Made by a program: the position numbers and the translations under genes
Notes under the pieces: model-generated
What the model was told of the DNA's origin: nothing
Databases searched by the model: none
The model's input: only the letters and a program-made list of their open reading frames with translations
In this document: positions 30,066-64,000 of the stretch, in pieces
Layout of the letters: each line of letters starts with the position of its first letter
How positions within the stretch are numbered: position 1 is the stretch's first letter
From: Ranitomeya imitator
Lineage: Eukaryota
Direction of reading: 5' to 3'
DNA: 64,000 bases
NCBI RefSeq assembly: GCF_032444005.1
Contig: NC_091283.1
Coordinates: 825,406,001-825,470,000 of the forward strand

Positions 30066-30378
30066 NNNNNNNNNNNNNNNNNNNNNNNNNNNNNNNNNNN
30101 NNNNNNNNNNNNNNNNNNNNNNNNNNNNNNNNNNNNNNNNNNNNNNNNNNNNNNNNNNNNNNNNNNNNNNNNNNNNNNNNNNNNNNNNNNNNNNNNNNNN
30201 NNNNNNNNNNNNNNNNNNNNNNNNNNNNNNNNNNNNNNNNNNNNNNNNNNNNNNNNNNNNNNNNNNNNNNNNNNNNNNNNNNNNNNNNNNNNNNNNNNNN
30301 NNNNNNNNNNNNNNNNNNNNNNNNNNNNNNNNNNNNNNNNNNNNNNNNNNNNNNNNNNNNNNNNNNNNNNNNNNNNNN
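30066..30378. other. Assembly gap (313 N)
   Basis: N run. Confidence 1.
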
Positions 30379-32060: not shown

Positions 32061-32225
32061 ATATATGCAATAGAAATAACAGCCTAACAAGCTTATAAAT
32101 ATATCTGGAATTTTTTTGGAACCCCAATAACACTTTTTGTAATGTTTATAAATAGGAAAAACAGGGTATTGTTAAAATAATCAGGAATACAATGTATTCA
32201 ACCTATCAACAATACACAATACTCT

Positions 32226-33790: not shown

Positions 33791-33970
33791 GATCACCAAG
33801 AACAGGGAATTAATACACTTGTAGTACCACTTTTCACCACTATGAGCATCAGCCAATACATTCTCTATAAAACTGCCTAGGAACATATTAGTGCCGTGCC
33901 AGAGGGGGCACAGCCCCTATGTCAGCCATGAAAACCATGGCTGCCTACTTCCAGGAACAGCACCACATGG

Positions 33971-37475: not shown

Positions 37476-37787
37476 TAGTGATGAGCGAATATACTCGTTA
37501 CTCAAGATTTCTCGAGCACTTTTGGGGGGTCCTCCGAGTATTTTTTAGTGCTCGGGGATTTAGTTTTTCTTGCCGCAGCTGAATGATTTACATCTGTTAG
37601 CCAGCATAAGTACATGTGGGGATTTCCTAGCAACCAGGCAACCCCCACATGTACTTATGCTGGCTAACAGATGTAAATCATTCAGCTGTGGCAAGAAAAA
37701 CTAAATCTCCGAGCACTAAAAAATACTCGGAGGACCCCCGAGCGTGCACGAGAAATCTCGAGTGACGAGTATATTCGCTCATCACTA
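37476..37787. mobile_element. Young palindromic hAT MITE, 312 bp
   Basis: TIR TAGTGATGAGCGAATATACTCG / CGAGTATATTCGCTCATCACTA. Perfect 8-bp TSD CTAGTAAA at 37468-37475 and 37788-37795. Confidence 0.95.
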
Positions 37788-41170: not shown

Positions 41171-41329
41171 ATAATCAATCATCACTACAACGCGCCGGCA
41201 TAAAGTCTGTCGTGAAGAATGAACCTATCACCCCTTGGCGTGTTAGCGGGGTGAAGGGATTATTTGTTTCTTTTTATCTCCTTTTGTAGGCAAAAGGGAT
41301 GCCCGATGGAGAGTGATTTTTAAGAAGAG

Positions 41330-42185
41330 ACACAATGGGGAATAACTATTATTAGGAGGCACAAAGGGGGTCATTATTATTAGTTATCAGGAGACATGAT
41401 GGGGGTCATTATTATAAGATGGCACAATGGGGGGTCACTATTATAAGAAGGCACAATGGGAGGTCATTATTATAAGATGGCACAATGGGGGGTCATTATT
41501 ATCAGTTATCAGGAGGCACGATGGAGGCCATTATTATAAGATGGCACAATGGTGGGTCATTATTATAAGAAGGCACAATGGGGGGTCATTATTATAAGGA
41601 GACGCAATGGGGGGGTCATTATTATAAAAAGGCACAATGGGAGGCCATTATTATCAGTTATCAGGAAGCACAGTGGGGGTCATTATTATAAGGAGACGCA
41701 ATGGGGGGTCATTATTATAAGGAGACGCAATGGGGGGTCATTATTATAAGAAGGCACAATGGGAGGCCATTATTATCAGTTATCAGGAAGCACAGTGGGG
41801 GTCATTATAAGGAGACGCAATGGGGGGTCATTATTATAAGAAGGCACAATAGGGTGTCATTATTATAAGGGAACACCATGGGGGGGTCATTATTATAAGG
41901 GAACACCATGGGGGGGTCGTTATTATAAGGAGGCGCAATGGGGGGTCGTTATTATAAGAAGGCACAATAGGGTGTCATTATTATAAGGAGACACCTTGGG
42001 GGGTGATTATTGTAAGGAGACACCTTGGGGGGTGATTATTATAAGAAGGCACAATGGGGGTCATTATTATAAGAAGGCACAATGGGGGTCATTATTGGTC
42101 ATTATTATAAGGAGACACCATGAGGGGGTCATTATTATAACAAGGCATTGTCAAGGGATCATAAGTATAAGGAGGCACACTAGAG
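41330..42185. repeat. ~29-bp minisatellite (GGGGGGTCATTATTATAAGGAGGCACAAT) with 37-38 bp variants
   Basis: About 28 degenerate tandem units read directly, ending at the hAT terminus. Confidence 0.92.
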
Positions 42186-42192
42186 TCATAAC

Positions 42193-42325
42193 TAGTGTTG
42201 AGCGATACCTTCCGATATCGGAAAGTATCGGTATCGGTTTGGATCGGCCGATATTCAAAAAATATCGGATATCGCCGATACCGATACCCGATCCCAATGC
42301 AAGTCAATGGGACCAAAATATCGGA
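42193..42325. promoter_or_regulatory. hAT terminal inverted repeat and subterminal motif cluster
   Basis: About ten (T)ATCGG/CCGAT(A) motifs in both orientations within 135 bp. Short subterminal repeats are the known transposase-binding sites in hAT elements such as Ac, Tol2 and Hermes. Confidence 0.75.
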
Positions 42326-43254
42326 ATTAAAATAAACCCTTTCTTTCCTTGTAGGTTCATTCTACCTGAAGGAAAACAACTAAGAATAATGTAGGATGTA
42401 TGGGGGAGGTGGCGGAGACATTAAAGGCAATGAGGATTAGTCCAATCAAATAGAATAGCATGTTTTTTTTTTTTTTTTAAAGAAGTTCGGATTGAAAAAG
42501 ATATTGAGTATGTAAATTTTTTTTATTTTGTCAGATATTGATGTTTCACTATTCCACGCCCTTCCCCTTCTTTTTTTTCTTTTTTTTTTTTTTCTTTTCC
42601 CACACTTTCATCTTCATCATCATCAGCATCCTTGACATCAACTTCTTCACCTTATTCATCTTCTTCTTCATCTTCTACCTATTTTTTTTTTTATTACATT
42701 CTTCATATTCATTTTCTTCAACTATTATTATTCTTCCTATTCTACATATTCTTTTTATTCCACTGTTATTATTCTTCCTATTCTACTTCTTCATCATATT
42801 CTCATTTGTGACAGGCATTCCCGTAGTTGTTATCTATAAAAGTTGGAAGATTACACCTTCCGTTCTGCCAGTCACAAAAGTTACATTTGTCCGCGTTCAG
42901 TTTGGCCTGCAGCATCAGGCTTTATCCAGGGGCACCACGAGGAGGAACGGACTCACCCCCATACACTGCTTAGTCTTCTTCTGCATATAATTTAGATAAT
43001 ATCTTTTGCTCTGATATTAAGTCTTATGCTTAATGTTCTTCTGCTCTTTGTTCTGCAGCCTCTTGTTCTTCTGCTTCTCGGTCTTCCATGTTGTCGTCTC
43101 CAGGGTCTTCGTCTCCAGTGTCGTCATCTCCGCCGTCGTCGTCTCAGCCGTCGTCGTCTCCGCCGTCGTCGTCGTCGTCGTCATCGGGGTGGTCTTCCGG
43201 GTCGTCGTCATCGGGGTGGTCTTCCGGGTTGTCGACGTTAGGGTCTTCAACTTG

Positions 43255-43860
43255 GAAATGTAGCAGAAGGTACAAGAAGGCTGAGAAAATGCCAAGAACC
43301 AGCTGATGGAACTGGAACTCGGATGGCTACCCGAAGGTTCAAGAGCCTATGGAACTACCGAGGACCAGCTGACGTTACTGGAACCCGGTTACTAAGCAGG
43401 AGGTACCCGTGCTAAAAAGCACTACCAAGGACCGCCTGACGTTGGCGGAACTCGGATACCCAGAAGGAGGCACCTAAGCCAAAGGCTCTGCCCGGAACCA
43501 GATGACGTTACTGGAACCAGGATGGGGAGCAGAAGGTACAAGAGCAAAAGACACTGCCGAGAACCAGCTGACGGTACTGGAACCCGGATGGGTAGCCGAA
43601 TGTCCAAGAGCCAATGGAACTACCAAGGACCAGCTGACGTTACTGGAACCCGGTTACTAAGCAGGAGGTACCCGTGCCTGAAAGCACTACCAAGGACCAC
43701 CTGACATTGGTGGAACTTGGATACCCAGAAGGAGGCACCTAAGCCAAAGGCTCTGCCCGGAACCAGCTGACGGTACTGGAACCAGGATGGGGAGCAGAAG
43801 GTACAAGAGCAAAAGACACTGCCGAGAACCAGCTGACGGTGCTGGAACCAGGTGGTGGAC
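43255..43860. repeat. ~66-bp monomer array arranged as a ~265-bp tetramer
   Basis: Motif GAACCAGCTGACG(G/T)TRCTGGAACC every 65-68 bp. Spacers 1-4 recur as spacers 5-8 (43296 vs 43561). Confidence 0.9.
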
Positions 43861-46800
43861 CCGAAGGCCCACAGGAGAGGAGAGAACAGCTAGGCCGCGA
43901 GGCAGCCGCAGTTACCGAACCCCAACAGTCCTACAGGGGGAGCTGGGCCTACTGGCACTACAGAACCAGCCTTGACTACCAGTTCACGCAGCCCACATAG
44001 GAAGCTCCTAAACTGGAGGCACCCTGGAGTTGGCTAACTCGACCGCCCCACGACGGGGCAAGCATAGGCGTCTCAGTGAAGTTGACACAACCCGGAAACA
44101 GCTGACGGTGCTGAAACCAGGCTTGGCACGAGGGAGTACCTGTGACAAGAACACTGCCGAGAACCAGCTGGCGGTGCTGGAACCCGGATGCGTTGCCCCA
44201 GTGTGCAAGAGCCAATGGCACGACCGAGGACCAGCTGACGGTGCTGGAACCCGGTTACTAAGCTGTAGGTGCCCGCGCTTAAAAGCACTACCAAGGACCG
44301 CCTGGCGTTGGCGGAACTCGGATACCCAGGAGGAGGCACCTAAGCCAAAGGCTCGGCCCGGAACCAGCTGACGGTGCTGGAACCAGGTGGTGGACCCCAA
44401 GGCCCACAGGAGAGGAGAGAACAGCTAGGCCGCGAGGCAGCCGCAGTTACCGAACCCCAACAGTCCTACAGGGGGAGCTGGGCCTACTGGCACTACAGAA
44501 CCAGCCTTGACTACCAGTTCACGCAGCCCACATAGGAAGCTCCTAAACTGGAGGCACCCTGGAGTTGGCTAACTCGACCGCCCCACGACGGGGCAAGCAT
44601 AGGCGTCTCAGTGAAGTTGACACAACCCGGAAACAGCTGACGGTGCTGAAACCAGGCTTGGCACGAGGGAGTACCTGTGACAAGAACACTGCCGAGAACC
44701 AGCTGGCGGTGCTGGAACCCGGATGCGTTGCCCCAGTGTGCAAGAGCCAATGGCACGACCGAGGACCAGCTGACGGTGCTGGAACCCGGTTACTAAGCTG
44801 TAGGTGCCCGCGCTTAAAAGCACTACCAAGGACCGCCTGGCGTTGGCGGAACTCGGATACCCAGGAGGAGGCACCTTAGCCAAAGGCTCGGCCCGGAACC
44901 AGCTGACGGTGCTGGAACCAGGTGGTGGACCCGAAGGCCCACAGGAGAGGAGAGAACAGCTAGGCCGCGAGGCAGCCGCAGTTACCGAACCCCAACAGTC
45001 CTACAGGGGGAGCTGGGCCTACTGGCACTACAGAACCAGCCTTGACTACCAGTTCACGCAGCCCACATAGGAAGCTCCTAAACTGGAGGCACCCTGGAGT
45101 TGGCTAACTCGACCGCCCCACGACGGGGCAAGCATAGGCGTCTCAGTGAAGTTGACACAACCCGGAAACAGCTGACGGTGCTGAAACCAGGCTTGGCACG
45201 AGGGAGTACCTGTGACAAGAACACTGCCGAGAACCAGCTGGCGGTGCTGGAACCCGGATGCGTTGCCCCAGTGTGCAAGAGCCAATGGCACGACCGAGGA
45301 CCAGCTGACGGTGCTGGAACCCGGTTACTAAGCTGTAGGTGCCCGCGCTTAAAAGCACTACCAAGGACCGCCTGGCGTTGGCGGAACTCGGATACCCAGG
45401 AGGAGGCACCTAAGCCAAAGGCTCGGCCCGGAACCAGCTGACGGTGCTGGAACCAGGTGGTGGACCCCAAGGCCCACAGGAGAGGAGAGAACAGCTAGGC
45501 CGCGAGGCAGCCGCAGTTACCGAACCCCAACAGTCCTACAGGGGGAGCTGGGCCTACTGGCACTACAGAACCAGCCTTGACTACCAGTTCACGCAGCCCA
45601 CATAGGAAGCTCCTAAACTGGAGGCACCCTGGAGTTGGCTAACTCGACCGCCCCACGACGGGGCAAGCATAGGCGTCTCAGTGAAGTTGACACAACCCGG
45701 AAACAGCTGACGGTGCTGAAACCAGGCTTGGCACGAGGGAGTACCTGTGACAAGAACACTGCCGAGAACCAGCTGGCGGTGCTGGAACCCGGATGTGTTG
45801 CCCCAGTGTGCAAGAGCCAATGGCACGACCGAGGACCAGCTGACGGTGCTGGAACCCGGTTACTAAGCTGTAGGTGCCCGCGCTTAAAAGCACTACCAAG
45901 GACCGCCTGGCGTTGGCGGAACTCGGATACCCAGGAGGAGGCACCTTAGCCAAAGGCTCGGCCCGGAACCAGCTGACGGTGCTGGAACCAGGTGGTGGAC
46001 CCCAAGGCCCACAGGAGAGGAGAGAACAGCTAGGCCGCGAGGCAGCCGCAGTTACCGAACCCCAACAGTCCTACAGGGGGAGCTGGGCCTACTGGCACTA
46101 CAGAACCAGCCTTGACTACCAGTTCACGCAGCCCACATAGGAAGCTCCTAAACTGGAGGCACCCTGGAGTTGGCTAACTCGACCGCCCCACGACGGGGCA
46201 AGCATAGGCGTCTCAGTGAAGTTGACACAACCCGGAAACAGCTGACGGTGCTGAAACCAGGCTTGGCACGAGGGAGTACCTGTGACAAGAACACTGCCGA
46301 GAACCAGCTGGCGGTGCTGGAACCCGGATGCGTTGCCCCAGTGTGCAAGAGCCAATGGCACGACCGAGGACCAGCTGACGGTGCTGGAACCCGGTTACTA
46401 AGCTGTAGGTGCCCGCGCTTAAAAGCACTACCAAGGACCGCCTGGCGTTGGCGGAACTCGGATACCCAGGAGGAGGCACCTTAGCCAAAGGCTCGGCCCG
46501 GAACCAGCTGACGGTGCTGGAACCAGGTGGTGGACCCCAAGGCCCACAGGAGAGGAGAGAACAGCTAGGCCGCGAGGCAGCCGCAGTTACCGAACCCCAA
46601 CAGTCCTACAGGGGGAGCTGGGCCTACTGGCACTACAGAACCAGCCTTGACTACCAGTTCACGCAGCCCACATAGGAAGCTCCTAAACTGGAGGCACCCT
46701 GGAGTTGGCTAACTCGACCGCCCCACGACGGGGCAAGCATAGGCGTCTCAGTGAAGTTGACACAACCCGGAAACAGCTGACGGTGCTGAAACCAGGCTTG

Positions 46801-49547
46801 GCACGAGGGAGTACCTGTGACAAGAACACTGCCGAGAACCAGCTGGCGGTGCTGGAACCCGGATGCGTTGCCCCAGTGTGCAAGAGCCAATGGCACGACC
46901 GAGGACCAGCTGACGGTGCTGGAACCCGGTTACTAAGCTGTAGGTGCCCGCGCTTAAAAGCACTACCAAGGACCGCCTGGCGTTGGCGGAACTCGGATAC
47001 CCAGGAGGAGGCACCTTAGCCAAAGGCTCGGCCCGGAACCAGCTGACGGTGCTGGAACCAGGTGGTGGACCCCAAGGCCCACAGGAGAGGAGAGAACAGC
47101 TAGGCCGCGAGGCAGCCGCAGTTACCGAACCCCAACAGTCCTACAGGGGGAGCTGGGCCTACTGGCACTACAGAACCAGCCTTGACTACCAGTTCACGCA
47201 GCCCACATAGGAAGCTCCTAAACTGGAGGCACCCTGGAGTTGGCTAACTCGACCGCCCCACGACGGGGCAAGCATAGGCGTCTCAGTGAAGTTGACACAA
47301 CCCGGAAACAGCTGACGGTGCTGAAACCAGGCTTGGCACGAGGGAGTACCTGTGACAAGAACACTGCCGAGAACCAGCTGGCGGTGCTGGAACCCGGATG
47401 CGTTGCCCCAGTGTGCAAGAGCCAATGGCACGACCGAGGACCAGCTGACGGTGCTGGAACCCGGTTACTAAGCTGTAGGTGCCCGCGCTTAAAAGCACTA
47501 CCAAGGACCGCCTGGCGTTGGCGGAACTCGGATACCCAGGAGGAGGCACCTAAGCCAAAGGCTCGGCCCGGAACCAGCTGACGGTGCTGGAACCAGGTGG
47601 TGGACCCGAAGGCCCACAGGAGAGGAGAGAACAGCTAGGCCGCGAGGCAGCCGCAGTTACCGAACCCCAACAGTCCTACAGGGGGAGCTGGGCCTACTGG
47701 CACTACAGAACCAGCCTTGACTACCAGTTCACGCAGCCCACATAGGAAGCTCCTAAACTGGAGGCACCCTGGAGTTGGCTAACTCGACCGCCCCACGACG
47801 GGGCAAGCATAGGCGTCTCAGTGAAGTTGACACAACCCGGAAACAGCTGACGGTGCTGAAACCAGGCTTGGCACGAGGGAGTACCTGTGACAAGAACACT
47901 GCCGAGAACCAGCTGGCGGTGCTGGAACCCGGATGCGTTGCCCCAGTGTGCAAGAGCCAATGGCACGACCGAGGACCAGCTGACGGTGCTGGAACCCGGT
48001 TACTAAGCTGTAGGTGCCCGCGCTTAAAAGCACTACCAAGGACCGCCTGGCGTTGGCGGAACTCGGATACCCAGGAGGAGGCACCTTAGCCAAAGGCTCG
48101 GCCCGGAACCAGCTGACGGTGCTGGAACCAGGTGGTGGACCCGAAGGCCCACAGGAGAGGAGAGAACAGCTAGGCCGCGAGGCAGCCGCAGTTACCGAAC
48201 CCCAACAGTCCTACAGGGGGAGCTGGGCCTACTGGCACTACAGAACCAGCCTTGACTACCAGTTCACGCAGCCCACATAGGAAGCTCCTAAACTGGAGGC
48301 ACCCTGGAGTTGGCTAACTCGACCGCCCCACGACGGGGCAAGCATAGGCGTCTCAGTGAAGTTGACACAACCCGGAAACAGCTGACGGTGCTGAAACCAG
48401 GCTTGGCACGAGGGAGTACCTGTGACAAGAACACTGCCGAGAACCAGCTGGCGGTGCTGGAACCCGGATGCGTTGCCCCAGTGTGCAAGAGCCAATGGCA
48501 CGACCGAGGACCAGCTGACGGTGCTGGAACCCGGTTACTAAGCTGTAGGTGCCCGCGCTTAAAAGCACTACCAAGGACCGCCTGGCGTTGGCGGAACTCG
48601 GATACCCAGGAGGAGGCACCTTAGCCAAAGGCTCGGCCCGGAACCAGCTGACGGTGCTGGAACCAGGTGGTGGACCCCAAGGCCCACAGGAGAGGAGAGA
48701 ACAGCTAGGCCGCGAGGCAGCCGCAGTTACCGAACCCCAACAGTCCTACAGGGGGAGCTGGGCCTACTGGCACTACAGAACCAGCCTTGACTACCAGTTC
48801 ACGCAGCCCACATAGGAAGCTCCTAAACTGGAGGCACCCTGGAGTTGGCTAACTCGACCGCCCCACGACGGGGCAAGCATAGGCGTCTCAGTGAAGTTGA
48901 CACAACCCGGAAACAGCTGACGGTGCTGAAACCAGGCTTGGCACGAGGGAGTACCTGTGACAAGAACACTGCCGAGAACCAGCTGGCGGTGCTGGAACCC
49001 GGATGCGTTGCCCCAGTGTGCAAGAGCCAATGGCACGACCGAGGACCAGCTGACGGTGCTGGAACCCGGTTACTAAGCTGTAGGTGCCCGCGCTTAAAAG
49101 CACTACCAAGGACCGCCTGGCGTTGGCGGAACTCGGATACCCAGGAGGAGGCACCTAAGCCAAAGGCTCGGCCCGGAACCAGCTGACGGTGCTGGAACCA
49201 GCTGGTGGACCCGAAGGCCCACAGGAGAGGAGAGAACAGCTAGGCCGCGAGGCAGCCGCAGTTACCGAACCCCAACAGTCCTACAGGGGGAGCTGGGCCT
49301 ACTGGCACTACAGAACCAGCCTTGACTACCAGTTCACGCAGCCCACATAGGAAGCTCCTAAACTGGAGGCACCCTGGAGTTGGCTAACTCGACCGCCCCA
49401 CGACGGGGCAAGCATAGGCGTCTCAGTGAAGTTGACACAACCCGGAAACAGCTGACGGTGCTGAAACCAGGCTTGGCACGAGGGAGTACCTGTGACAAGA
49501 ACACTGCCGAGAACCAGCTGGCGGTGCTGGAACCCGGATGCGTTGCC
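43830..49547. repeat. 535-bp tandem array, ~10.7 copies, >99% identical
   Basis: Identical ORF calls recur at 44030, 44565 ... 49380 (period exactly 535). Confidence 0.98.
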
Positions 49548-49549
49548 TT

Positions 49550-52500
49550 GCCTATTAAAGATTGTCTTCCTAGAGCCCCAACTAGCGGTGTTGGAGCAAA
49601 GGGTAAGCAGGGGGAGATGAGTGTAGGCCGAAGCCTGCACTGGAGGCAGCTTTGTGTCTGCGTTGCGTTTGCAGGACACTTTGCCGGCTACACACTGGGG
49701 GAACAGCTGGCGTTGCTGAACCCCACTAACACAATGGCGTGTGTTTTTATCTGTGCAGCTAGCACTTGCGGGCAAAAACTTGCGATGTTAGAGCCCGTGT
49801 TGAAGCAGGAGGAGGAGGAGAGGAGCAGAGTGTAGACCGAAGCCTAGTTGAACCAATTTCAAAGGAAACCTTTAACCCCCCCCTCAGGTGTTACAAAGTA
49901 CAAGAGACACACCTTGTGCAGTATTAATGCTGCACAAGTGAAAGGTTGCTCTATTAATTTGTCTACTTGCACACGCTGAATGAAAGACATACACAATTTA
50001 CCCCATTCTACAGTCAAACTGTCATGTTGGCCGGTGCGGTGCTGATCCCTTCTCGCATGCCGCGGCCATGAGGCTGCACAGTCTGAAGAAGGCGGAAGGA
50101 GATGAGTTAAGACAGGCGAAGATATGCACTGCTCGTGCCCATCAATCACACCCTCGCAGTCAAAATAATTAAGACAACGAGGAGCATTTTATTCAGGCAG
50201 GGCGGACGAACAGGCGCAAGTAGCCAACCAATGATGTCAGAAGACGGGAAGCGCTACCAAGGGGGGTGCTGCGTATCATTAGAAAGGAAAGTCACACCTC
50301 AGGGACAGTGGAATGGTCTCAAAGAGACACATTTTGTACGTGTTGAGTTCCACGTGGGCAAGGAGAAAACGTCAGCCACCTTGTACAAATGCAGCAGTAC
50401 TGCTGTACAAGGTGGCTGTTATACATAGAAACACCTGGGGGTGGTGGCCAGGCTCCCTTCAATTTCAGTTCATGTGCCTGCGTGGCGTTTGCAGGTCACG
50501 TTGCAAGCTGCACAGCAGGGGAACAGCTGGCGGTGCTGAACCCCACTAACACATTGGCTGGTGTTTTTCTCTGTGCAGCTAGCATGTCCGGGCAGAAACT
50601 GGCGTTGTTTGAGCCCAGGGTCAGCAGGAGGAGGAGAGGAGCAAAGTGTAGGCCGAAGCCTGCACTGGTGGCAGCTTTTGTTCTGTTGTGCCAGCGTGGC
50701 TTGTGCTGGACACGTTGCCGACTACACAGCAGGGGAACAGCTGGCGGTGCTGAACCCCACTAACACATTGGCTGGTGTTTTTCTCTGTGCAGCTAGCATT
50801 TCCGGGCAAAAACTAGCGGTGTTTGAGCCCAGGGTCAGCAGGAGGAGTAGAGGAGCAGAGTGTTGGCCAAAGCCTAGTTGAACCAATTTCAAAGGTTACC
50901 TTTAACCCCCCCCTCAGGTGTTGCAAGGTACAAGAGCCACACCTTGAACAGCATTATTGATGCACAAGTCAAAGGTTGCTCTATTTAATTTTGCTCCTTG
51001 CACACGCTGAATTAAACACGTACACTATTTAGCCCATTATACTGTCAAACAGTAGTGGAGGCGTGACTACTAGTCTTTTTAAGGAGACGCAGCACAGGTG
51101 TACAAATTTACACCTAGGTGCTGTGCGCAGATTCCTTACCGTTGTTATTTGCAGTACAGGAAACTGCGCTCTTGTGTTATCCCTTGGCAATACCCTGTTA
51201 GTGCAGGCCGTCTCATGACCTCATTTCATGTTGGCCGGTGCGGTTAACGATGGCCATAAATCCCAGACCCACAGTGGCTTTTCCTAAAGTCACACTGCGG
51301 TGCTGGGATTCGTGGCCTTGTGCAGTAAATATGTTCGCCGCTCACACATGTCCTTACACCTGCTTCAGACTGGGCGGCCTCAGCTGATCCCTTATCGCAT
51401 GCCGCGGCCATGAGGCCGCACAGTCAGAAGAAGGCGGAAGGAGGGGAGTGAAAACAGGGGAACATATGCACTGCTCGTGCCCATCAATCACACCCTCGCA
51501 GTCAAAATATATGAGACAACGGGGGGCGTTGTGTCGGGCAGGGGGGACGCACAGGCACAGCCAGCCAACCAATGATGTCAGGAGACGGGCAGCGCTAACA
51601 ATGGGGGTGCTGCGTGTCATTAAAAAGGAAAGTCACACCTCAGGGACATTGTAATGGTCTGTAATGAGACACATTTTGTACTTGTTGAGTTCCACGTGTG
51701 CAAGGAGAAAAAGTCAGCCACCTTGTACAAATGCAGCAGTACTGCTGTACAAGGTGGCTGTTATACATAGAAACACCTGGGGGGGTGGGGGGCAGGCTCC
51801 CTTCAATTTCAGTTCATGTGCCTGCGTGGCGTTTGCAGGTCACGTTGCAAGCTACACAGCAGGGGAACAGCTGGCGTTGCTGAACCCCACTGACACATTG
51901 ACTGGTGTTTTTCTCTGTGCAGATTGCATGTCCGGGCAAAAACTAGCGGTGTTAGAGCCCAGGGTCAGCAGGAGGAGGAGGAGAGGAGCAAAGTGTAGGC
52001 CGAAGCCTGCACTGGTGGCAGCTTTTGGTCGGTTGTGCCAGCGTGGCTTGTGCTGGACACGATGCCGGCTACACAGCGGGGGAACAGCTGGCGGTGCTGA
52101 ACCACACTAACACATTGGCTGGTGTTTTTCTCTGTGCAGCTAGCATGTCCGGGCAGAAACTGGCGTTGTTTGAGCCCAGGGTCAGCAGGAGGAGGAGAGG
52201 AGCAAAGTGTAGGCCGAAGCCTGCACTGGTGGCAGCTTTTGTTCTGTTGTGCCAGCGTGGCTTGTGCTGGACACGTTGCCGACTACACAGCAGGGGAACA
52301 GCTGGCGGTGCTGAACCCCACTAACACATTGGCTGGTGTTTTTCTCTGTGCAGCTAGCATTTCCGGGCAAAAAATAGCGGTGTTTGAGCCCAGGGTCAGC
52401 AGGAGGAGTAGAGGAGCAGAGTGTAGGCCGAAGCCTAGTTGAACCAATTTCAAAGGTTACCTTTAACCCCCCCCTCAGGTGTTGCAAGGTACAAGAGCCA

Positions 52501-55500
52501 CACCTTGAACAGCATTAATGATGCACAAGTCAAAGGTTGCTCTATTTAATTTTGCTCCTTGCACACGCTGAATTAAACACGTACACTATTTAGCCCATTA
52601 TACTGTCAAACAGTTGTGGAGGCGTGACTTGTCTTTTTAACGAGACGCAGCACAGGTGTCAAAATTTGCACCTAGGTACTGGGCGCAGATTCCTGAGCGT
52701 TGTTATTTGCTGTACAGGAGTCTGCGCTCTTGTGTTATCCCTTGGCAATACCCTGTTAGTGCAGGCCGTCTCATGACCTCATTTCATGTTGGCCGGTGCG
52801 GTTAACGATGGCCATAAATCCCAGACCCACAGTGGCTTTTCCTAAAGTCACACTGCGGTGCTGGGATTCGTGGCCTTGTGCAGTAAATATGTTCGCCGCT
52901 CACACATGTCCTTACACCTGCTTCAGACTGGGCGGCCTCTGCTGATCCCTTATCGCATGCCGCGGCCATGAGGCCGCACAGTCAGAAGAAGGCGGAAGGA
53001 GGGGAGTGAAAACAGGGGAACATATGCACTGCTCGTGCCCATCAATCACACCCTCGCAGTCAAAATATATGAGACAACGGGGGGCGTTGTGTCGGGCAGG
53101 GGGGACGCACAGGCACAGCCAGCCAACCAATGATGTCAGGAGACGGGCAGCGCTAACAATGGGGGTGCTGCGTGTCATTACAAAGGAAAGTCACACCTCA
53201 GGGACATTGTAATGGTCTCTAATGAGACACATTTTGTACGTGTTGAGTTCCACGTGGGCAAGGAGAAAAAGTCAGCCACCTCGTACAAATGCAGCAGTAC
53301 TGCTGTACAAGGTGGCTGATATACATAGAAACACCTGTGGGTGGGGGGCAGGCTCCCTTCAATTTCAGTTCATGTGCCTGCGTGGCGTTTGCAGGTCACG
53401 TTGCAAGCTACACAGCAGGGGAACAGCTGGCGTTGCTGAACCCCACTAACACATTGGCTGGTGTTTTTCTCTGTGCAGCTAGCATGTCCGGGCAGAAACT
53501 GGCGTTGTTTGAGCCCAGGGTCAGCAGGAGGAGGAGAGGAGCAAAGTGTAGGCCGAAGCCTGCACTGGTGGCAGCTTTTGGTCGGTTGTGCCAGCGTGGC
53601 TTGTGCTGGACACGTTGCCGACTACACAGCAGGGGAACAGCTGGCGGTGCTGAACCCCACTAACACATTGGCTGGTGTTTTTCTCTGTGCAGCTAGCATT
53701 TCCGGGCAAAAACTAGCGGTGTTTGAGCCCAGGGTCAGCAGGAGGAGTAGAGGAGCAGAGTGTAGGCCGAAGCCTAGTTGAACCAATTTCAAAGGTTACC
53801 TTTAACCCCCCCCTCAGGTGTTGCAAGGTACAAGAGCCACACCTTGTGCAGCATTAATGCTGCACAAGTAAAAGGTTGCTCTATTTGTTTTGCTCCTTGC
53901 ACACGCTGACTAAAACACGTACACTATTTAGCCCATTATACTGTCAAACAGTTGTGGAGGCGTGACTTGTCTTTTTAACGAGACGCAGCACAGGTGTCAA
54001 AATTTGCACCTAGGTACTGGGCGCAGATTCCTGAGCGTTGTTATTTGCTGTACAGGAGTCTGCGCTATTGTGATCCCTTGGCCATGCGCTGTGAGCGCTT
54101 CCTGTCTTCTGACCTCATTTCATGTCGGCCGTTGCGGTTAGCGATGGACATGAATCCCAGACCCACAGTGTGTTTTTAAAAAATCACACTGCGGTGCTGG
54201 GATTCGTGCCCTGGTGCACTAAATATGTTTGCCGCTCACACATGTCCTTACACCTGCTTCAGACTGGGCGGCCTCATCTGATCCCTTATCGCCTGCCGCG
54301 GCCATGAGGACACCCAGTCTGAAGAAGGCGGAAGGAGATGAGTGAACACAGGCAAACATATGCACTGCACATGCCCATCAATCACACCCTCGCTGTCCAA
54401 AAAAATAAGACACCGAGGGCCGTTGTTTCGAGCAGGGGAGATGCACAGGCGCAGCCAGCTAACCAATGATGTCAAAAGACGGGCAGCGCTAACAAGGGTG
54501 GTGCTGCGTGTCATTACAAAGGAAAGTCACACCTCAGGGACATTGTAATGGTCTCTAATGAGACACATTTTGTACGTGTTGAGTTCCACGTGGGCAAGGA
54601 GAAAAAGTCAGCCACCTCGTACAAATGCAGCAGTACTGCTGTACAAGGTGGCTGATATACATAGAAACACCTGTGGGTGGGGGGCAGGCTCCCTTCAATT
54701 TCAGTTCATGTGCCTGCGTGGCGTTTGCAGGTCACGTTGCAAGCTACACAGCAGGGGAACAGCTGGCGTTGCTGAACCCCACTGACACATTGACTGGTGT
54801 TTTTCTCTGTGCAGATTGCATGTCCGGGCAAAAACTAGCGGTGTTAGAGCCCAGGGTCAGCAGGAGGAGGAGGAGAGGAGCAAAGTGTAGGCCGAAGCCT
54901 GCACTGGTGGCAGCTTTTGGTCGGTTGTGCCAGCGTGGCTTGTGCTGGACACGATGCCGGCTACACAGCGGGGGAACAGCAGGCGTTGCTGAACCCCACT
55001 AACACATTGGCTGGTGTTTTTCTCTGTGCAGCTAGCATGTCCGGGCAGAAACTGGCGTTGTTTGAGCCCAGGGTCAGCAGGAGGAGGAGAGGAGCAAAGT
55101 GTAGGCCGAAGCCTGCACTGGTGGCAGCTTTTGGTCGGTTGTGCCAGCGTGGCTTGTGCTGGACACGTTGCCGACTACACAGCAGGGGAACAGCTGGCGG
55201 TGCTGAACCCCACTAACACATTGGCTGGTGTTTTTCTCTGTGCAGCTAGCATTTCCGGGCAAAAACTAGCGGTGTTTGAGCCCAGGGTCAGCAGGAGGAG
55301 TAGAGGAGCAGAGTGTAGGCCGAAGCCTAGTTGAACCAATTTCAAAGGTTACCTTTAACCCCCCCCTCAGGTGTTGCAAGGTACAAGAGCCACACCTTGT
55401 GCAGCATTAATGCTGCACAAGTAAAAGGTTGCTCTATTTGTTTTGCTCCTTGCACACGCTGACTAAAACACGTACACTATTTAGCCCATTATACTGTCAA

Positions 55501-58500
55501 ACAGTTGTGGAGGCGTGACTTGTCTTTTTAACGAGACGCAGCACAGGTGTCAAAATTTGCACCTAGGTACTGGGCGCAGATTCCTGAGCGTTGTTATTTG
55601 CTGTACAGGAGTCTGCGCTATTGTGATCCCTTGGCCATGCGCTGTGAGCGCTTCCTGTCTTCTGACCTCATTTCATGTCGGCCGTTGCGGTTAGCGATGG
55701 ACATGAATCCCAGACCCACAGTGTGTTTTTAAAAAATCACACTGCGGTGCTGGGATTCGTGCCCTGGTGCACTAAATATGTTTGCCGCTCACACATGTCC
55801 TTACACCTGCTTCAGACTGGGCGGCCTCATCTGATCCCTTATCGCCTGCCGCGGCCATGAGGACACCCAGTCTGAAGAAGGCGGAAGGAGATGAGTGAAC
55901 ACAGGCAAACATATGCACTGCACATGCCCATCAATCACACCCTCGCTGTCCAAAAAAATAAGACACCGAGGGCCGTTGTTTCGAGCAGGGGAGATGCACA
56001 GGCGCAGCCAGCTAACCAATGATGTCAAAAGACGGGCAGCGCTAACAAGGGTGGTGCTGCGTGTCATTACAAAGGAAAGTCACACCTCAGGGACATTGTA
56101 ATGGTCTCTAATGAGACACATTTTGTACGTGTTGAGTTCCACGTGGGCAAGGAGAAAAAGTCAGCCACCTCGTACAAATGCAGCAGTACTGCTGTACAAG
56201 GTGGCTGATATACATAGAAACACCTGTGGGTGGGGGGCAGGCTCCCTTCAATTTCAGTTCATGTGCCTGCGTGGCGTTTGCAGGTCACGTTGCAAGCTAC
56301 ACAGCAGGGGAACAGCTGGCGTTGCTGAACCCCACTGACACATTGACTGGTGTTTTTCTCTGTGCAGATTGCATGTCCGGGCAAAAACTAGCGGTGTTAG
56401 AGCCCAGGGTCAGCAGGAGGAGGAGGAGAGGAGCAAAGTGTAGGCCGAAGCCTGCACTGGTGGCAGCTTTTGGTCGGTTGTGCCAGCGTGGCTTGTGCTG
56501 GACACGATGCCGGCTACACAGCGGGGGAACAGCAGGCGGTGCTGAACCCCACTAACACATTGGCTGGTGTTTTTCTCTGTGCAGCTAGCATGTCCGGGCA
56601 GAAACTGGCGTTGTTTGAGCCCAGGGTCAGCAGGAGGAGGAGAGGAGCAAAGTGTAGGCCGAAGCCTGCACTGGTGGCAGCTTTTGGTCGGTTGTGCCAG
56701 CGTGGCTTGTGCTGGACACGTTGCCGACTACACAGCAGGGGAACAGCTGGCGGTGCTGAACCCCACTAACACATTGGCTGGTGTTTTTCTCTGTGCAGCT
56801 AGCATTTCCGGGCAAAAACTAGCGGTGTTTGAGCCCAGGGTCAGCAGGAGGAGTAGAGGAGCAGAGTGTAGGCCGAAGCCTAGTTGAACCAATTTCAAAG
56901 GTTACCTTTAACCCCCCCCTCAGGTGTTGCAAGGTACAAGAGCCACACCTTGTGCAGCATTAATGCTGCACAAGTAAAAGGTTGCTCTATTTGTTTTGCT
57001 CCTTGCACACGCTGACTAAAACACGTACACTATTTAGCCCATTATACTGTCAAACAGTTGTGGAGGCGTGACTTGTCTTTTTAACGAGACGCAGCACAGG
57101 TGTCAAAATTTGCACCTAGGTACTGGGCGCAGATTCCTGAGCGTTGTTATTTGCTGTACAGGAGTCTGCGCTATTGTGATCCCTTGGCCATGCGCTGTGA
57201 GCGCTTCCTGTCTTCTGACCTCATTTCATGTCGGCCGTTGCGGTTAGCGATGGACATGAATCCCAGACCCACAGTGTGTTTTCAAAAAATCACACTGCGT
57301 GGCTGGGATTCGTGGCCTTGTGCAGTAAATAGGTTTGCCGCTTACACATGTCCTTACACCTGCTCCAGACTGGGCGGCCTCAGCTGATCCCTTATCGCCT
57401 ACCACGGCCAGGAGGCCGCACAGTCTGAAGAAGGCGGAAGGAGATGAGTTAAGACAGGCGAACATATGCACTGCTCGTGCCCATAAACCACACCCTCGCT
57501 GACAAAATAAATATGACAACGAGGGGCGTTGTTTCTAGCAGGGCGGATGCACAGGCGCAGCCAGCTAACCATGATGACAAAAGACGGGAAACGCTACCAA
57601 GGGGGGTGCTGCGTATCATTACAAAGGAAAGTCACACCTCAGGGACAGTGGAATGGTCTCAATGAGACACATTTTGTACGTGTTGAGTTCCACGTGGGCA
57701 AGGAGAAAAAGTCAGCCACCTTGTACAAATGCAGCAGTACTGCTGTACTAGGTGGCTGTTATACATAGAAACACCTGGGGGGGTGGGGCCAGGTTCCCTT
57801 TTAATTTCAGTTCCTGTGCCTGCATGGCGTTTGCAGGTCACGTTGCCGGCTACACAGCAGGGGAACAGCTGGCGTTGCTGAACCCCACTAACACATTGGC
57901 TGGTGTTTTTCTCTGTGCAGCTAGCACTTCCGGGCAAAAACTAGCGGTGTTTGAGCCCAGGGTCAGCAGGAGGAGGAGAGGAGCAGAGTGTAGGCCGAAG
58001 CCTGCACTGGTGGCAGCTTTTGTTCTGTTGTGCCAGCGTGGCTTGTGCTGGACACGTTGCCGACTACACAGCAGGGGAACAGCTGGCGGTGCTGAACCCC
58101 ACTGACACATCACCTAGTGTTTTTTTCTGTGTAGACAACACTTCCAGGTGGCAACTGACAGTGTTGAAACCCAGGGAATCAAAGAGGAGCAGAGTGTAGG
58201 CCGAAGCCTGCAGTGGAGCAAGTTGAAAGGGAACCTTTAACCCCCCCCCCAGGCATTTGTTGCTGAAAGAGCCATCTTGTACAGCAGTAATACTGCACAT
58301 GGAAAATGGTGGCTCCGAAAATTATGCTCCTTGCAAACGCTGAAGTACACACTCATATAATGTGTCCCCTCACACCGTCAAACCATCCCGGAAGTGGGAC
58401 TTTCCTTTGTAATGTGACACAGCACAGCCGTCATTCCAACCCCCTTGGTGCCGGGCACCACCTCCTCAACGTTGTTTGGTTCTGTCACGGAGCCCGCACT

Positions 58501-60960
58501 GTAATGTTATCCCTTGGCCATGCACAGTTAGCGGTGCCCGTCTTCTGACATCATGTAGGTGTCAGGCTGGCAGTGCCTGTGCGTCCAAGCTGCCCGAGAT
58601 CCAACCTTGCAGTGTCATCTAATGTAGTCCCACTGCGGGCCAGGGATCCATGGGCATGCGCAGTGCATATCATCGCCTCTCACTCACCTCCTTCCTGCTT
58701 CTTCAGACTGTGCGGCGTCACGGCCGTGGCATGCTATTAGGGATCAGCTGACGCCGCCTAGTCTGAAGAAGCGTGAAGAAGGGGAGTGAGAGGCTAGTAT
58801 ATGCACTGCGCATGGCCATGGATACCAGGCCCACTGTGGGATCACATTAGACGACACTGCGAGGTGTGATTTCGGGCAGCGTGGACGCACAGGCGCAGCC
58901 AGGACGACAACAAATGATGTCAGAGGACGGGCAGCGCAAACTGTGCATGGCCAAGGGATAACATAACAGCGCAGGGTCCATGACGGAATCAAACAACGCT
59001 AAGGAGGCAGCGCACGGTGCCAAGGGGGTAGCAATGACGGCTGTGCTGCGTCACATTACAAAGGAAAGTCCCACCTCCGGGACGGTTGGACGGTGTGAGG
59101 GGACACATTACATGAGTGTGTAGTTCAGCGTTTGCAAGGAGCATAATTTCAAGAGCGACCTTTCCCTTGTGCAGTATTAGTGCTGCACATGGTGGCTCTT
59201 TCAGTAACAAACGCCTAGGGGGGGGGGGGACAGGTCCCCTTACATTTTAGTTGTGCCAGCGTGGCGGTCGCATGACACGTTGCCGGATACACAGCTGGGG
59301 ATCAGCTGACGTTACTGAACCCCAATAACAGAGGAGCGACTGTTGACTGTGCACACAGCACTTCCAGGCACCAACTGGCGGTGTTAGAGCCCAGGGACAG
59401 CAGGAGGAGCAGATTGGAGGTATTGCCGCACACACAGCTGGGGATCAGCTGACGTTACTGAACCCCAATAACAGAGGAGCGACTGTTGACTGTGCACACA
59501 GCACTTCCAGGCACCAACTGGCGGTGTTAGAGCCCAGGGACAGCAGGAGGAGCAGATTGGAGGTATTGCCGCACACACAGCTGGGGATCAGCTGACGTTA
59601 CTGAACCCCAATAACAGAGGAGCGACTGTTGACTGTGCACACAGCACTTCCAGGCACCAACTGGCGGTGTTAGAGCCCAGGGACAGCAGGAGGAGCAGAG
59701 GAACAGAGTGTAGGCCGAAGCCTGATTGGAGCAAGTTGAAAGGAAACCTTTAACCCCCCCCCCAAGACGTTTGTAGCTGAAAGAGCCATGTTGTGCAGCA
59801 CTAAGGATGCAAAAGGAAAAGGTTGCTCTTTTAATTATGCTCCTTGCAAACACCGAAGTAAACACTAAAAATGTGTCCCTTTATACCGTTAAACCGTTCC
59901 GGAGGTGCGAATTTCCTTCGTAATGGGACACAGCACAGCTGTCATTCCTATCCCCTTGATGCCGTGCGCTGCCTCCTCAGCGTTGTTTTAAGCTGCCACG
60001 GAGCCTGCGCTGTTCTGTTAGCCCTTGGCCATGCCCAATTAGCGCTGCCTGTCTTCTGACATAATTTGGTGTCAGGCTGTCAGTGCCTGTGCGTCCACGC
60101 TGCTCCAGATCCCACCTCGCAGTCTCATCTAACGTAATCCCACTGCGGGCCTTGGAACCATGGGCATGCACAGTGCATAACCTCGACTCTCACTCCCCTC
60201 CTTCCCTCTTCTTCAGACTGTGCGGTGTCACGGCCGTGGCATGCTAGGGATCAGCTGACGGCGCACAGTCTAAAGAAGGCGGAGGGAAATGAGCGAGAGC
60301 CCGAGGGGAAGATATGCACTGCGCATGCCCATGGATCCCAGGCCCGCAGTGTGACTCAATCAGAAGACACTGCGAGGCGGGATCTCGGGCACCGCGGCCG
60401 CACAGGCGCAGCCAGCCTGACACCAAATTATGTCAGAAGACAGGCAGCGCAAATAGGGCATGCCCAAGGGATAACAGAACAGCGCAGGCTCCGTGACAGC
60501 TTAAAACAACGCTGAGGAGGCAGCGCATGGCACCAAGGGGGTAGGAATGACGGCTGTGCTGCGTCACATTACGAAGGAAAGTCCCAGCTCCGGGACGGTA
60601 TAACGGTATCAGTGAACACATTTTATAAGTGTTAAGTTCTGCGTGTGCAAAGAGCTAAAAAAAAAGAGCTACCTTTTCCTTGTGCAGCATTACTGCTGCA
60701 CAAGATGGCTCTTTCAGTAACAAACGACGGGGGGGGGGGGGGGACAGGTTCCCTTACATTTAGGTTGTTGTGCCAGCGTGGCGGTCGCAGGACACATTGC
60801 CGGCTACACAGCTGGGGATCAGCTGACGTTACTGAAACCCAATAACACTGGGTCGTATGTTTTTACTGTGCAGCCTGCACTTCTGAGCCGCAACTGGCGG
60901 TGTTGGAGCCCAGGAATAGCAGTTCAGGTGGTAGAAAGATGAACACAGCAGGAGACCTGG
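49550..60960. repeat. Composite array of eight ~0.6-1.0 kb foldback cassettes separated by 1-3 copies of ~215-bp or 143-bp motif subunits
   Basis: Cassette left ends AGG(T/G/A)(T/A)ACCTTTAACCCCCC at 49862, 50892, 52453, 53792, 55345, 56898, 58228 and 59741 (intervals 1030-1561 bp). Confidence 0.9.
59289..59700. repeat. 143-bp unit x3, essentially identical
   Basis: ACAGCTGGGGATCAGCTGACGTTACTGAACCCC at 59291, 59434 and 59577. Confidence 0.95.
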
Positions 60961-60975
60961 ATGACACCCAATTAC

Positions 60976-63900
60976 TTAATCAGGCAGAGGAGTGGCAAAT
61001 TCCTGCGAGATCCAGGCCTGGTTCATTTTCAGGAAAGTAAGCCGGTCAACGTTATCGGAGGATAGTCGCATGCGACGGTCTGTTAGTACACCACCTGCGG
61101 CACTAAAGACACGTTCCGATAAGACACTAGCCGCAGGGCAAGCCAGCACCTCCAATGCATACTGGCTTAGCTCTGGCCATGTATCCAGCTTAGAGACCCA
61201 AAACTTGAACGGGGAAGAGCCGTCTGGGAGTACAGTAAGAGGGCAAGCCATGTAGTCTGTCACCATCTGACGGAACCGTTGCCTCCTGCTGACTGGAGCC
61301 GCCGGTGATGGTGTAGACATTTGGGGCGGGCACACAAAAGTGTGCCAGAGTTGTGCCATACTGGGCTTGCCTTGGGCAGAGGCACTGCTTCTGCTCCCTC
61401 TTTGGGCAGAGCCTCCCCCACTGCCTCGACGCACTGAGCTGCTTTGTAAAGCACTAGCAGCACTCCTCTCAGTTGGACAGGAGAAGATGATGGAATTCAC
61501 CAGTGTGTCGTGGTACTCCCGCAATTTACGCTCCCGGGTCAACGCAGGGATGAGGTTTTGGACGTTGTCCCGGTAGCGAGGATCGAGGAGGGTGAACACC
61601 CAATAATCAGGCATGTTGAGAATGTGGTCGATGCGGCGGTCGTTTCTCAGGCACTGCAGCATGAAATCCACCATGTGCTGCAGAGTGCCAACCGGCCCAG
61701 AAACGCTGTCCCCTGCTTGAGACATGATCTCTGCCCGCTCGTCATCACCCCACCCTCGCTGTACACACTGACCACTGGACAATTGTGTCGCTCCCTCCTC
61801 TGGACGGAGCTCTTCCTCCTCCATTGACTCCTCCTCATCCTCCTCACAAATTGGCCCCTGCGTACCCCTTTGTGAGGAACCACGTGGCGCTGACTCTCCA
61901 GAAGCTGATGGAAAAGGTGACTCCTCATCCTCCACCTCTTCCACCACATCATCCCTTAACCCTTGCAAAGTTTGCTGAAGCAGGCAGATAAGGGGGACAG
62001 TCATGCTGACTAGTGCATCATCTGCACTTGCCATCCGCGTGGAATAATCAAAAGGACGCAAAACCTGGCAGACGTCCTTCATAGTGGCCCACTCTGTGGT
62101 TGTGAAGTCTGATCGGCGCTGACTGCGACTTCTTTGCGCCTGATGCAGCTGGTACTCCATAACTGCTTGCTGCTGCTCACACAACCGCTCCAACATATGT
62201 AACGTGGAATTCCACCGGGTAGGTAGGTCACATATGATGCGGTGTTCCGGAAGGCGGAATCGGCGCTGCAGAGCAGCAATGCGGGATCTGGCCAAGCTGG
62301 AACGCCGCAAGTGAGCACACTCTAGGCGGACCTTGTGCAGCAGGGCATCAAGATCCGGATAGTCCCTCAGAAAACTCTGCACAACCAAATTGAGCACATG
62401 TGCCAGACATGGGATGTGAGTGAGGTTGCCAAGGGCCAAAGCTGCCACCAGATTTCGGCCATTGTCACACACTACCATGCCTGGCTGGAGATTCGCTGGC
62501 AGTAACCACACATCGCTCTCCTGCTTTATGGCATTCCAGAGCTCCTGCGCTGTGTGGCTTCGATGCCCCAATGAAACTAGTTTCAAGACGGCCTGCTGAC
62601 GTTTGGCCACGGCTGTGCTCATGTCGGTCATAGGTAAACGTTCACGGGTCCATGTGGGGGTGGACTGTGACGGATCCTGCAGAGAGGAATCAGAGGAACT
62701 GGTGTAAGAGGAGGAGTCGATGCGTACAGACTGGATTCCTGCAATCCTTGGAGTGGGCAGGACACGTCCTGCGCCACTCGCACGATCTGTACCTGGCTCA
62801 ACAACATTAACCCAATGGGCAGTGAGGGAAACATATCGCCCCTGTCCATGCTGACTGGTCCACGCATCGGTGGTGAGGTGGACCTTGCTACTGACGGCGT
62901 TCAGTAGCGCATGTTTTATGTTTGCCTCAACATGCCTGTGCAGGGCAGGGACAGCCTGCCTGCTGAAGTAAAAGCGGCTGGGCACCTTGTACTGTGGGAC
63001 TGCCAATGCCATCAAGTCACGGAAGCTGTCAGTCTCCACCAGCCTGAACGAGAGCATTTCCAGGGACAACAGTTTGGCAATGCCTGCATTCAGAGCCTGT
63101 GCTCGGGGGTGGTTGGCCGAGAATGCCCGCCTTTTCTCCCATGCCTGTACTACCGATGGCTGTAGAGTAGACTGGGAGTGTGAGGATGACTGGGAAGGTG
63201 GTGCTGTGGGTGGAATTACACAAGGTCTCTGGGAGGAAGCCAAACCAGCTGTGCGTGAGCTGGAGGAAGAGGCAACACGAGCTGAAGAGGTGGTAGCTGC
63301 CGCTGTTGGTTGGCCTACATCTTCAGTGTGTTTCTGTAACTCCACCGCGTGCCTGGTCCGCACATGTTTCCACATATTTGTGGTATTGAGGTTGCTGACA
63401 TTTTTCCCTCTTTTTACTTTATGATGACACAGCTTGCATTTGACAAAACAAATGTCATCTGCAACTGTGTCAAAAAAGGACCAGGCACTGCAAGTCTTGG
63501 GAGCGCCCTTTTTGGCTTTGGAAAGAGACAGGCTCCTAACGGGTGCCAAAGTGGAGGCTACAGGCTCCGCAGTCTTCCCCCTCCCTCTCCCTCTTTGGCC
63601 CGTAAGAGGAAGCTCTTCCTCTGAGCTGCTCCCACCACCTTCCTGTTCCTCACGCCACGATGGGTCAAGGACCTCATCATCTCCACTACCCTCTGCCACC
63701 AACTGCTCCTCCTGGGTAGTCTCAGCAGCACAGTACGCACGAGAAAGCGGCACCTGAGTTTCATCATCAGATGCGTACTGCGCTGTGGTCACCGGAGGCA
63801 CTGGCCCACCTGCCTCTTCAGAGTCAGAGAGAAAAAGGTGTTGGGCATCACTGCACACTGCCTCTTCTTCCATTTCTCCAATGCTGCTTGGCTGGCCCCC

Positions 63901-64000
63901 TGTTTCCAAGCCAAGAGATTCAGAGAACAGAAGTAGAGACGGCTCCTGTCCTGGGCTCTCTGACTGCCTGGCCAATTTGGCAGGTGGTGAAGAGACAGAT
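60976..64000 (-). CDS. hAT transposase (BED finger, DDE, C-terminal dimerisation domain), ZBED4/ZBED6-like, 5' incomplete
   Basis: Stop-free for >1000 codons, and the frame stays open to the window edge. BED finger AWSFF...CKLC...TTNMWKHVRTRH. Catalytic motifs TTDAWT, VCDNG, CLAH, PTRWNST and SVLSERVFS. Confidence 0.95.
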   Translation of the reverse strand, partial: SVSSPPAKLARQSESPGQEPSLLLFSESLGLETGGQPSSIGEMEEEAVCSDAQHLFLSDSEEAGGPVPPVTTAQYASDDETQVPLSRAYCAAETTQEEQLVAEGSGDDEVLDPSWREEQEGGGSSSEEELPLTGQRGRGRGKTAEPVASTLAPVRSLSLSKAKKGAPKTCSAWSFFDTVADDICFVKCKLCHHKVKRGKNVSNLNTTNMWKHVRTRHAVELQKHTEDVGQPTAAATTSSARVASSSSSRTAGLASSQRPCVIPPTAPPSQSSSHSQSTLQPSVVQAWEKRRAFSANHPRAQALNAGIAKLLSLEMLSFRLVETDSFRDLMALAVPQYKVPSRFYFSRQAVPALHRHVEANIKHALLNAVSSKVHLTTDAWTSQHGQGRYVSLTAHWVNVVEPGTDRASGAGRVLPTPRIAGIQSVRIDSSSYTSSSDSSLQDPSQSTPTWTRERLPMTDMSTAVAKRQQAVLKLVSLGHRSHTAQELWNAIKQESDVWLLPANLQPGMVVCDNGRNLVAALALGNLTHIPCLAHVLNLVVQSFLRDYPDLDALLHKVRLECAHLRRSSLARSRIAALQRRFRLPEHRIICDLPTRWNSTLHMLERLCEQQQAVMEYQLHQAQRSRSQRRSDFTTTEWATMKDVCQVLRPFDYSTRMASADDALVSMTVPLICLLQQTLQGLRDDVVEEVEDEESPFPSASGESAPRGSSQRGTQGPICEEDEEESMEEEELRPEEGATQLSSGQCVQRGWGDDERAEIMSQAGDSVSGPVGTLQHMVDFMLQCLRNDRRIDHILNMPDYWVFTLLDPRYRDNVQNLIPALTRERKLREYHDTLVNSIIFSCPTERSAASALQSSSVRRGSGGGSAQRGSRSSASAQGKPSMAQLWHTFVCPPQMSTPSPAAPVSRRQRFRQMVTDYMACPLTVLPDGSSPFKFWVSKLDTWPELSQYALEVLACPAASVLSERVFSAAGGVLTDRRMRLSSDNVDRLTFLKMNQAWISQEFATPLPD

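Follow-up and report, generated by a model that had tools for sequence, protein, structure and literature searches.

We have analyzed a window of 64,000 nucleotides from the genome of the dendrobatid frog Ranitomeya imitator (NC_091283.1, positions 825,406,001 to 825,470,000), in which a hAT-type transposase gene and a hAT-type terminal inverted repeat (TIR) are separated by a long region rich in tandem arrays. The simplest reading is that they belong to one element of an abundant, recently active hAT family, the 3' non-coding region of which has been inflated by arrays derived from the element itself. With a probability of about 0.65, positions 42193-64000 represent at least the 3' four-fifths of a single young copy from a very abundant, autonomous, Ac-like hAT family of dendrobatid frogs; with the same degree of confidence we assign the end at 42193 to this very transposase copy, as its 3' end. 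A size of more than 21.8 kb is likely rather than proven, since the other end of the element lies beyond the window. The element is young, and the hAT family to which it belongs is very abundant in samples from several frogs. For the chain that leads from the TIR through a subterminal segment of 1 kb and the motif-bearing arrays to the transposase there is support at each link, both in this copy and in others. A sequence-only reading of the same DNA had proposed such a single mobile unit, and its claims are taken up below together with the results that bear on them. The features of the element and of its flank are listed in Table 1.

Table 1. Features of the proposed element and its left flank, with positions in the window (TSD, target site duplication; MITE, miniature inverted-repeat transposable element)
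Feature	Position	Strand	Description
Foldback MITE, 312 bp	37476-37787		TIR TAGTGATGAGCG at both ends; perfect 8-bp TSD CTAGTAAA
Candidate TSD copy GTCATAAC	42185-42192	.	Read directly; abuts the element end; fits nTnnnnAn
Terminal inverted repeat TAGTGTTGAGCG	42193-42204	+	YARNG-type hAT end; 3' end relative to the transposase
Subterminal TATCGG/CCGATA hexamer cluster	42205-42330	.	9 copies and 2 GATCGG variants
Non-array end-proximal segment	42331-43261	.	AT-rich, low complexity; GTC/GAC-rich minisatellite at 43093-43244
66-bp repeat array	43262-43871	+	8.9 copies; 265-bp higher-order unit; carries the shared motif
535-bp tandem array	43822-49547	+	10.7 units; 0-5 bases different between units
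Higher-order array	49548-58056	+	~5.5 units of ~1.34-1.56 kb, 91-96% alike
Two ~1.5-kb units, 82% alike	58057-60922	+	1-kb foldback in each: 58226-59244 and 59737-60755
143-bp x 2.9 array	59280-59699	+	Within the 58057-60922 block
hAT transposase frame	60976-64000	-	Open over 1007 codons down to the stop at 60976-60978; N-terminus past 64000
Dimer_Tnp_hAT dimerisation domain	~61027-61221	-	PF05699, E = 1.7e-14, 53.8 bits (cut-off 21.4)
zf-BED	~63349-63486	-	PF02892, E = 1.4e-7, 31.8 bits (cut-off 20.6)

A transposon end at position 42193

Contigs from four public runs, each from one of four coded organisms (X1, organism A; X3, organism B; X14, organism D; X15, organism F), were aligned to positions 41200-44000 and 59500-64000, with likeness cut-offs that differed between the two alignments (90 and 85). 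The 1.55-kb array (49.5-58 kb) lies outside these intervals, and the summed contig depth reported here is not a copy number. The 12-mer TAGTGTTGAGCG is present as a single exact copy in the window, at 42193-42204. When up to 2 mismatches are allowed the window contains 7 matches against 3.4 expected, so that the 12-mer by itself is not significant. The validity of the boundary derives instead from a step in depth, from the start of a contig in organism B and from a cluster of hexamers. In organisms A and F the summed contig depth is ~10-400 to the left of 42193 and 1e5-1e6 to the right, a rise of ~1000-fold, and a step in the bin that holds 42193 is found in organisms B and D as well. The match of one organism B contig begins exactly at 42193 and is preceded by 28 letters unlike the flank seen here, which means that the same end is present at another site. 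Nine of the 16 TATCGG/CCGATA hexamers in the window fall in 42212-42324; they are presumed to be transposase-binding sites, and subterminal repeats bound by the transposase are the arrangement established for Ac and Hermes. These results bear out the hAT-type TIR that the sequence-only reading had placed at 42193, and they support this position as the genuine end of a very high-copy mobile element. Between 42193 and 64000 there is no other TIR-like 12-mer at up to 2 mismatches, and hence no complete nested element with such ends.

The nTnnnnAn sequence is the target pattern of Ac-group hATs. In the candidate duplication GTCATAAC at this end and in the duplication CTAGTAAA of the foldback MITE in the left flank, position 2 is T and position 7 is A, and neither has TA at positions 4-5. 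As judged from these two sites only, the target pattern would thus be that of the Ac group and not the nnnTAnnn of the Buster group. The TIR of the MITE, TAGTGATGAGCG, is one mismatch away from the giant element end TAGTGTTGAGCG, and the interior of the MITE is unrelated.

In two of the runs the left flank may also continue without the element. A 1505-bp contig of organism A follows the flank without a difference from 42067 to 42194 and then runs on for 1377 letters unlike the element, and a 125-bp contig of organism F follows it to 42191 before diverging. Both contigs are consistent with an insertion-free allele or an orthologue, and hint at one. The hAT end is inserted into a 29-bp satellite, ATGGGGAGTCATTATTATAAGAAGGCACA, which occupies 41306-42136 with ~77% matches and has higher-order periods of 58 and 122 bp; this satellite is low-copy in the runs examined.

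The transposase

The stop codon of the transposase gene lies 18,783 bp from the TIR and the gene points toward the 42193 end, in agreement with the ~18.8 kb and the orientation given by the sequence-only reading. When the protein is aligned to Hermes, the second D (VCDNG), the CxxH motif (CLAH), the RW motif (PTRWNST) and the E (SERVFS) are in place, and the dimerisation domain aligns to Hermes residues 435-506. The first catalytic D is assigned by motif only, to TTDAWT, which lies outside the block aligned to Hermes. Judged by its sequence, with the dimerisation domain, the DDE core motifs and the BED finger all present, the transposase belongs to the hAT superfamily and is apparently functional. 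The description of the gene as intact stands for the 1007 codons visible here, which are open and carry the catalytic motifs, but the frame runs past 64000. A TTG start at 63975 had been proposed as well; this is an artefact of the ORF (open reading frame) listing, and the relatives align further upstream. They do so from the very first codon of the window, and the 49% relative has 106 further residues upstream, from which it follows that ~100 or more N-terminal codons should lie beyond 64000.

The best protein matches are to 'ZBED4/6-like' models of Ranitomeya variabilis (85-86%) and of other dendrobatids; among them is a R. variabilis 'ZBED6-like' protein model with 86% identity to the transposase. 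A domesticated ZBED host gene was considered and is ruled out by the copy number and the TIR-bounded context. The ORF is represented by tens of thousands of variant contigs, and in X1 the summed depth is ~6e5 across the ORF as against ~10 for contigs of the unique flank. For annotation this matters because transposases of this kind are now named as ZBED4/6-like host genes in frog genomes.

In organism D a few long, clean contigs tile the transposase ORF with 0-7 differences each, and the one that covers 60807-61464 spans the stop codon into the array with 0 differences. We take these contigs, from a low-coverage run, to represent the consensus of its most abundant subfamily, in which case the window copy is almost undiverged. 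The window transposase and two array ORFs had no entry in exact database look-ups, and when metagenome and viral contigs were scanned with the transposase no relative came up. A 17-base pattern for the end matched 120 loci, which are chance matches, as none of them has blastn similarity to the element. When the window was compared with itself at E < 1e-10, nothing in its first 42 kb resembled the element.

Arrays and foldbacks between the end and the stop codon

From the end-proximal segment to the stop codon, ~17.7 kb is made up of nested tandem arrays and foldbacks, and the block of arrays next to the transposase has its boundary 54 bp from the stop codon. The sequence-only reading had seen nothing but arrays and foldbacks between the TIR and the transposase; this is correct for 43262-60922, but the first 1.07 kb (42193-43261) is not array. 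The end-proximal kilobase contains broken frames only and no intact ORF. Within the higher-order array, the units of 1.34-1.56 kb hold 214-bp subrepeats together with a diverged half of the foldback.

The arrays are linked by a shared 21-bp motif, CAGCTGRCGKTRCTGRAACCC, as had been noticed from the letters. At up to 3 mismatches there are 71 copies of this motif, all of them on the + strand and all between 43.2 and 60.9 kb, and the remaining 42 kb of the window have no copy. For eight ORFs from the arrays or the end-proximal segment Pfam gave no match above cut-off, and the arrays are therefore taken as non-coding; Rfam has no family in 41000-64000. The CpG observed/expected ratio is 0.5-0.6 in the element and 1.13 in the end-proximal kilobase, compared with 0.25-0.46 in the flanks, and mildly favours a young element.

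Abundance and junctions in public runs

The median summed depths of the end-proximal kilobase and of the transposase are ~8.6e5 and ~6e5 in X1, 7.6e3 and 1.2e4 in X3, 39 and 40 in X14, and 4.1e5 and 6e5 in X15. The ratio of the two thus stays between 0.6 and 1.4 over four orders of magnitude in the four runs, and this matched abundance is suggestive of a link between the end-proximal kilobase and the transposase. Contigs of organisms B and D join the end-proximal segment to the 66-bp array across 43261.

The arrays vary in length among copies, as many joints drop 66-bp repeats or the 1-kb foldback. In some organism A copies the foldback is missing (joint 59724>60764, 6 contigs). The 1-kb foldback (59725-60763 and 58226-59244) may be an insertion or a deletion-prone hairpin, and has no evident TSD. 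The 535-bp unit is abundant in organisms A, B and D and is depleted ~100-fold or more in organism F. Relative to the transposase, its depth is ~19-fold in organism B and ~0.004-fold in organism F; in organism D it is ~5.5-fold, compared with 10.7 units in the window copy. The unit, aligned over 43832-44000 in X3 and X15, has the behaviour of a satellite specific to the lineage, one that may be present outside the transposon as well, and its near-absence from organism F means that a part of the size is specific to the lineage or to the locus. Because the array content is fluid in this way, the exact figure of 21.8+ kb belongs to this copy and not to the family. The proposal of a single mobile unit is accordingly upheld in part: the junctions recur and the abundances match, but the lengths of the arrays vary and one of the array units is depleted in organism F.

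One element or several

Several points weigh against assigning the whole region to one copy. One end is in the window; the 5' TIR, the second copy of the TSD and the start of the ORF all lie beyond 64000. The depths, which do not measure copy number, were obtained at the two different cut-offs of 90 and 85, and the support from reads comes from 41200-44000 and 59500-64000, on either side of the 1.55-kb array (49.5-58 kb). Across species the 535-bp unit does not vary in step with the transposase, and it behaves as a satellite of its own. A misjoin between two copies during assembly is possible, given an abundant family with arrays 99.7% alike. Small public runs contain 84-99% of the transposase words; none of them is recorded as RNA, and all are of uncertain type.

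The most serious alternative, which we nevertheless consider unlikely, is that a single element of ordinary to moderate size was inserted here and that the arrays gained most of their 17.7 kb in place, after insertion. The unit that jumps would then be much smaller, and the present copy may have become too large or unstable for movement. A very recent expansion is indicated by the 0-5 base differences between 535-bp units, and the copies elsewhere with fewer 66-bp repeats or without the 1-kb foldback, as well as the ~5.5-fold depth of the 535-bp unit in organism D set against the 10.7 units here, also fit this explanation. It is opposed by the possible insertion-free alleles, which suggest that the insertion was recent and left little time for growth. 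A composite locus is less probable still. Here the 42193 end, the adjoining 1 kb and the distal arrays would come from a second, non-autonomous or truncated member of the family, brought together with the transposase by ectopic recombination between arrays, by insertion of one copy into the array of the other or by a misjoin in the assembly, and the 21.8 kb would never have moved as a whole. Both ectopic exchange and misassembly are favoured by the near-identical arrays of an extremely abundant family. The stepwise identity of the arrays (99.7% for the 535-bp units, 91-96% for the 1.55-kb units and 82% for the proximal units) fits parts of different history, and the abundance of the 535-bp unit is decoupled from that of the transposase. 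On the other hand, there is no second TIR anywhere inside the region, all 71 copies of the motif have a single polarity, and the end-proximal abundance tracks that of the transposase in the four runs; moreover, recombination between copies in the same orientation would itself yield a genuine element that has both ends.

That the arrays are a block of host satellite unrelated to the transposon, in which a hAT end and a transposase copy are embedded by chance, is very improbable. The 535-bp and 66-bp units do reach 10-20 times the abundance of the transposase in organism B, an excess that a free-standing satellite should have. However, only 54 bp separate the stop codon from the array, their junction recurs without a difference in a consensus-like contig of organism D, the abundance of the proximal foldback region follows that of the transposase in all four runs, and the motif CAGCTGRCGKTRCTGRAACCC is found nowhere else in the window. 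We prefer one element, from an abundant hAT family; much of the element's size may have arisen after insertion or be lineage-specific.

In the mechanism that we propose for this element, a BED-finger DDE transposase would bind the short TIR and the subterminal TATCGG repeats and excise the element by cut-and-paste, and insertion would take place at nTnnnnAn targets with an 8-bp duplication. The region from the stop codon to the 3' subterminal kilobase would have grown to ~17.7 kb through nested arrays and foldbacks, all of which would descend from one motif of ~21 bp. As non-coding passengers the arrays would be gained and lost by unequal exchange, by slippage and by template switching in the repair of the gap left by excision. 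Copies would differ in the length of their arrays and species in the composition, and every transposition would seed a new site. The element would still be mobile at present.

Provided that its two ends pair in the way proposed, the element is an autonomous cut-and-paste transposon 4-6 times the usual size of a hAT, the bulk of which is its own satellite DNA. It would offer a testable mechanism for the dispersal of satellite families to many loci, and a candidate source of the 'unclassified repeat' fraction of dendrobatid genomes, which is ~25% in Ranitomeya imitator (PMC8457190, marked as retracted). Given the abundance of the family, the spread of arrays by the element, which the sequence-only reading had put forward as a route to genome expansion, is plausible. 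It is a more tentative proposal, somewhat short of an even chance, that the family routinely moves as units of 12-25 kb made mostly of self-derived satellite, that it is active now, with the present insertion polymorphic and an empty allele in the same species, and that its tens of thousands of copies make up several percent of a genome of ~6-7 Gb. Were there such an active giant family, a cut-and-paste transposon would be a main vehicle for the spread of satellites and for growth of the genome.

Comparison with known systems

Autonomous Ac, hobo, Hermes and Tol2 elements are ~3-5 kb long. The frog element resembles these members of the Ac group (ZBED-type) in its BED finger, its RNase-H-like DDE core, its CxxH and RW motifs and its hAT dimerisation domain, and also in its short YARNG-type TIR, its subterminal hexamer repeats and its nTnnnnAn target. 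It differs from them in the 18.8 kb of array-filled sequence between stop codon and 3' end and in the length of the transposase, which has 1007 or more codons with low-complexity inserts. Since vectors made from Tol1 and Tol2 accommodate inserts of 10-20 kb or more, mechanism alone is no bar to a unit of this size. In two short public contigs, relatives of the transposase have tandem duplications just upstream of the ORF, of 307 bp in the 49% relative (L121, 1-608) and of 135 bp in a 35% relative (L122, 1-270); repeat-rich flanks may thus be old in this clade. In L122 the sequence TAGTGATGA lies 640 bp past the stop codon and is a possible end of a relative of normal size; the chance expectation for such 8-mers is ~1.6 per contig, and we treat it as no more than a lead.

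Tandem repeats carried by transposons are known to seed satellites, as in the case of the Tetris foldback element of Drosophila virilis (PMC4079207) and in those of the miDNA4 MITE of Xenopus tropicalis and Helitron-borne arrays (reviewed in PMC9659126). The frog arrays are like these in that the units originate within a DNA transposon, multiply in tandem, differ in number between copies and can turn into abundant satellites, and in that there are foldback structures. Those systems are a few kb long and belong to the non-autonomous, foldback or Helitron elements, whereas the frog element is apparently an autonomous hAT with several nested types of array totalling ~17.7 kb. A length of more than 20 kb, if the ends pair as proposed, would place it with giant transposons such as Teratorn, the Mavericks/Polintons and giant long terminal repeat elements. 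These are large through extra genes, however, and the frog element has no extra coding capacity. A review of giant eukaryotic transposons contains no mention of hAT (PMC6431247), and our literature search found no description of an autonomous hAT with kilobase-scale arrays. The hAT superfamily makes up a large share of a big amphibian genome, that of Pleurodeles waltl, mainly as MITEs (PMC11872487); in contrast to this bulk of short non-autonomous MITEs, the long array-bearing transposase copies of the frogs are themselves very abundant. By RepeatMasker, hATs account for ~1.4-3.9% of dendrobatid assemblies (PMC8457190, marked as retracted; PMC11152451).

Other features of the window

The remainder of the window contains a 7-kb satellite at 7524-14488, which consists of ~387 copies of the 18-bp unit AGTACTGATGTGCCATGG with 92% matches and has a strong GC skew. 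This satellite yields spurious ORFs of more than 2300 codons on both strands. Runs of N are located at 27733-28450 (718 bases) and 30066-30378 (313 bases). A strong negative GC skew (-0.43 to -0.45) is found over 32000-34000, and a 258-bp x 2 repeat occupies 34025-34541.

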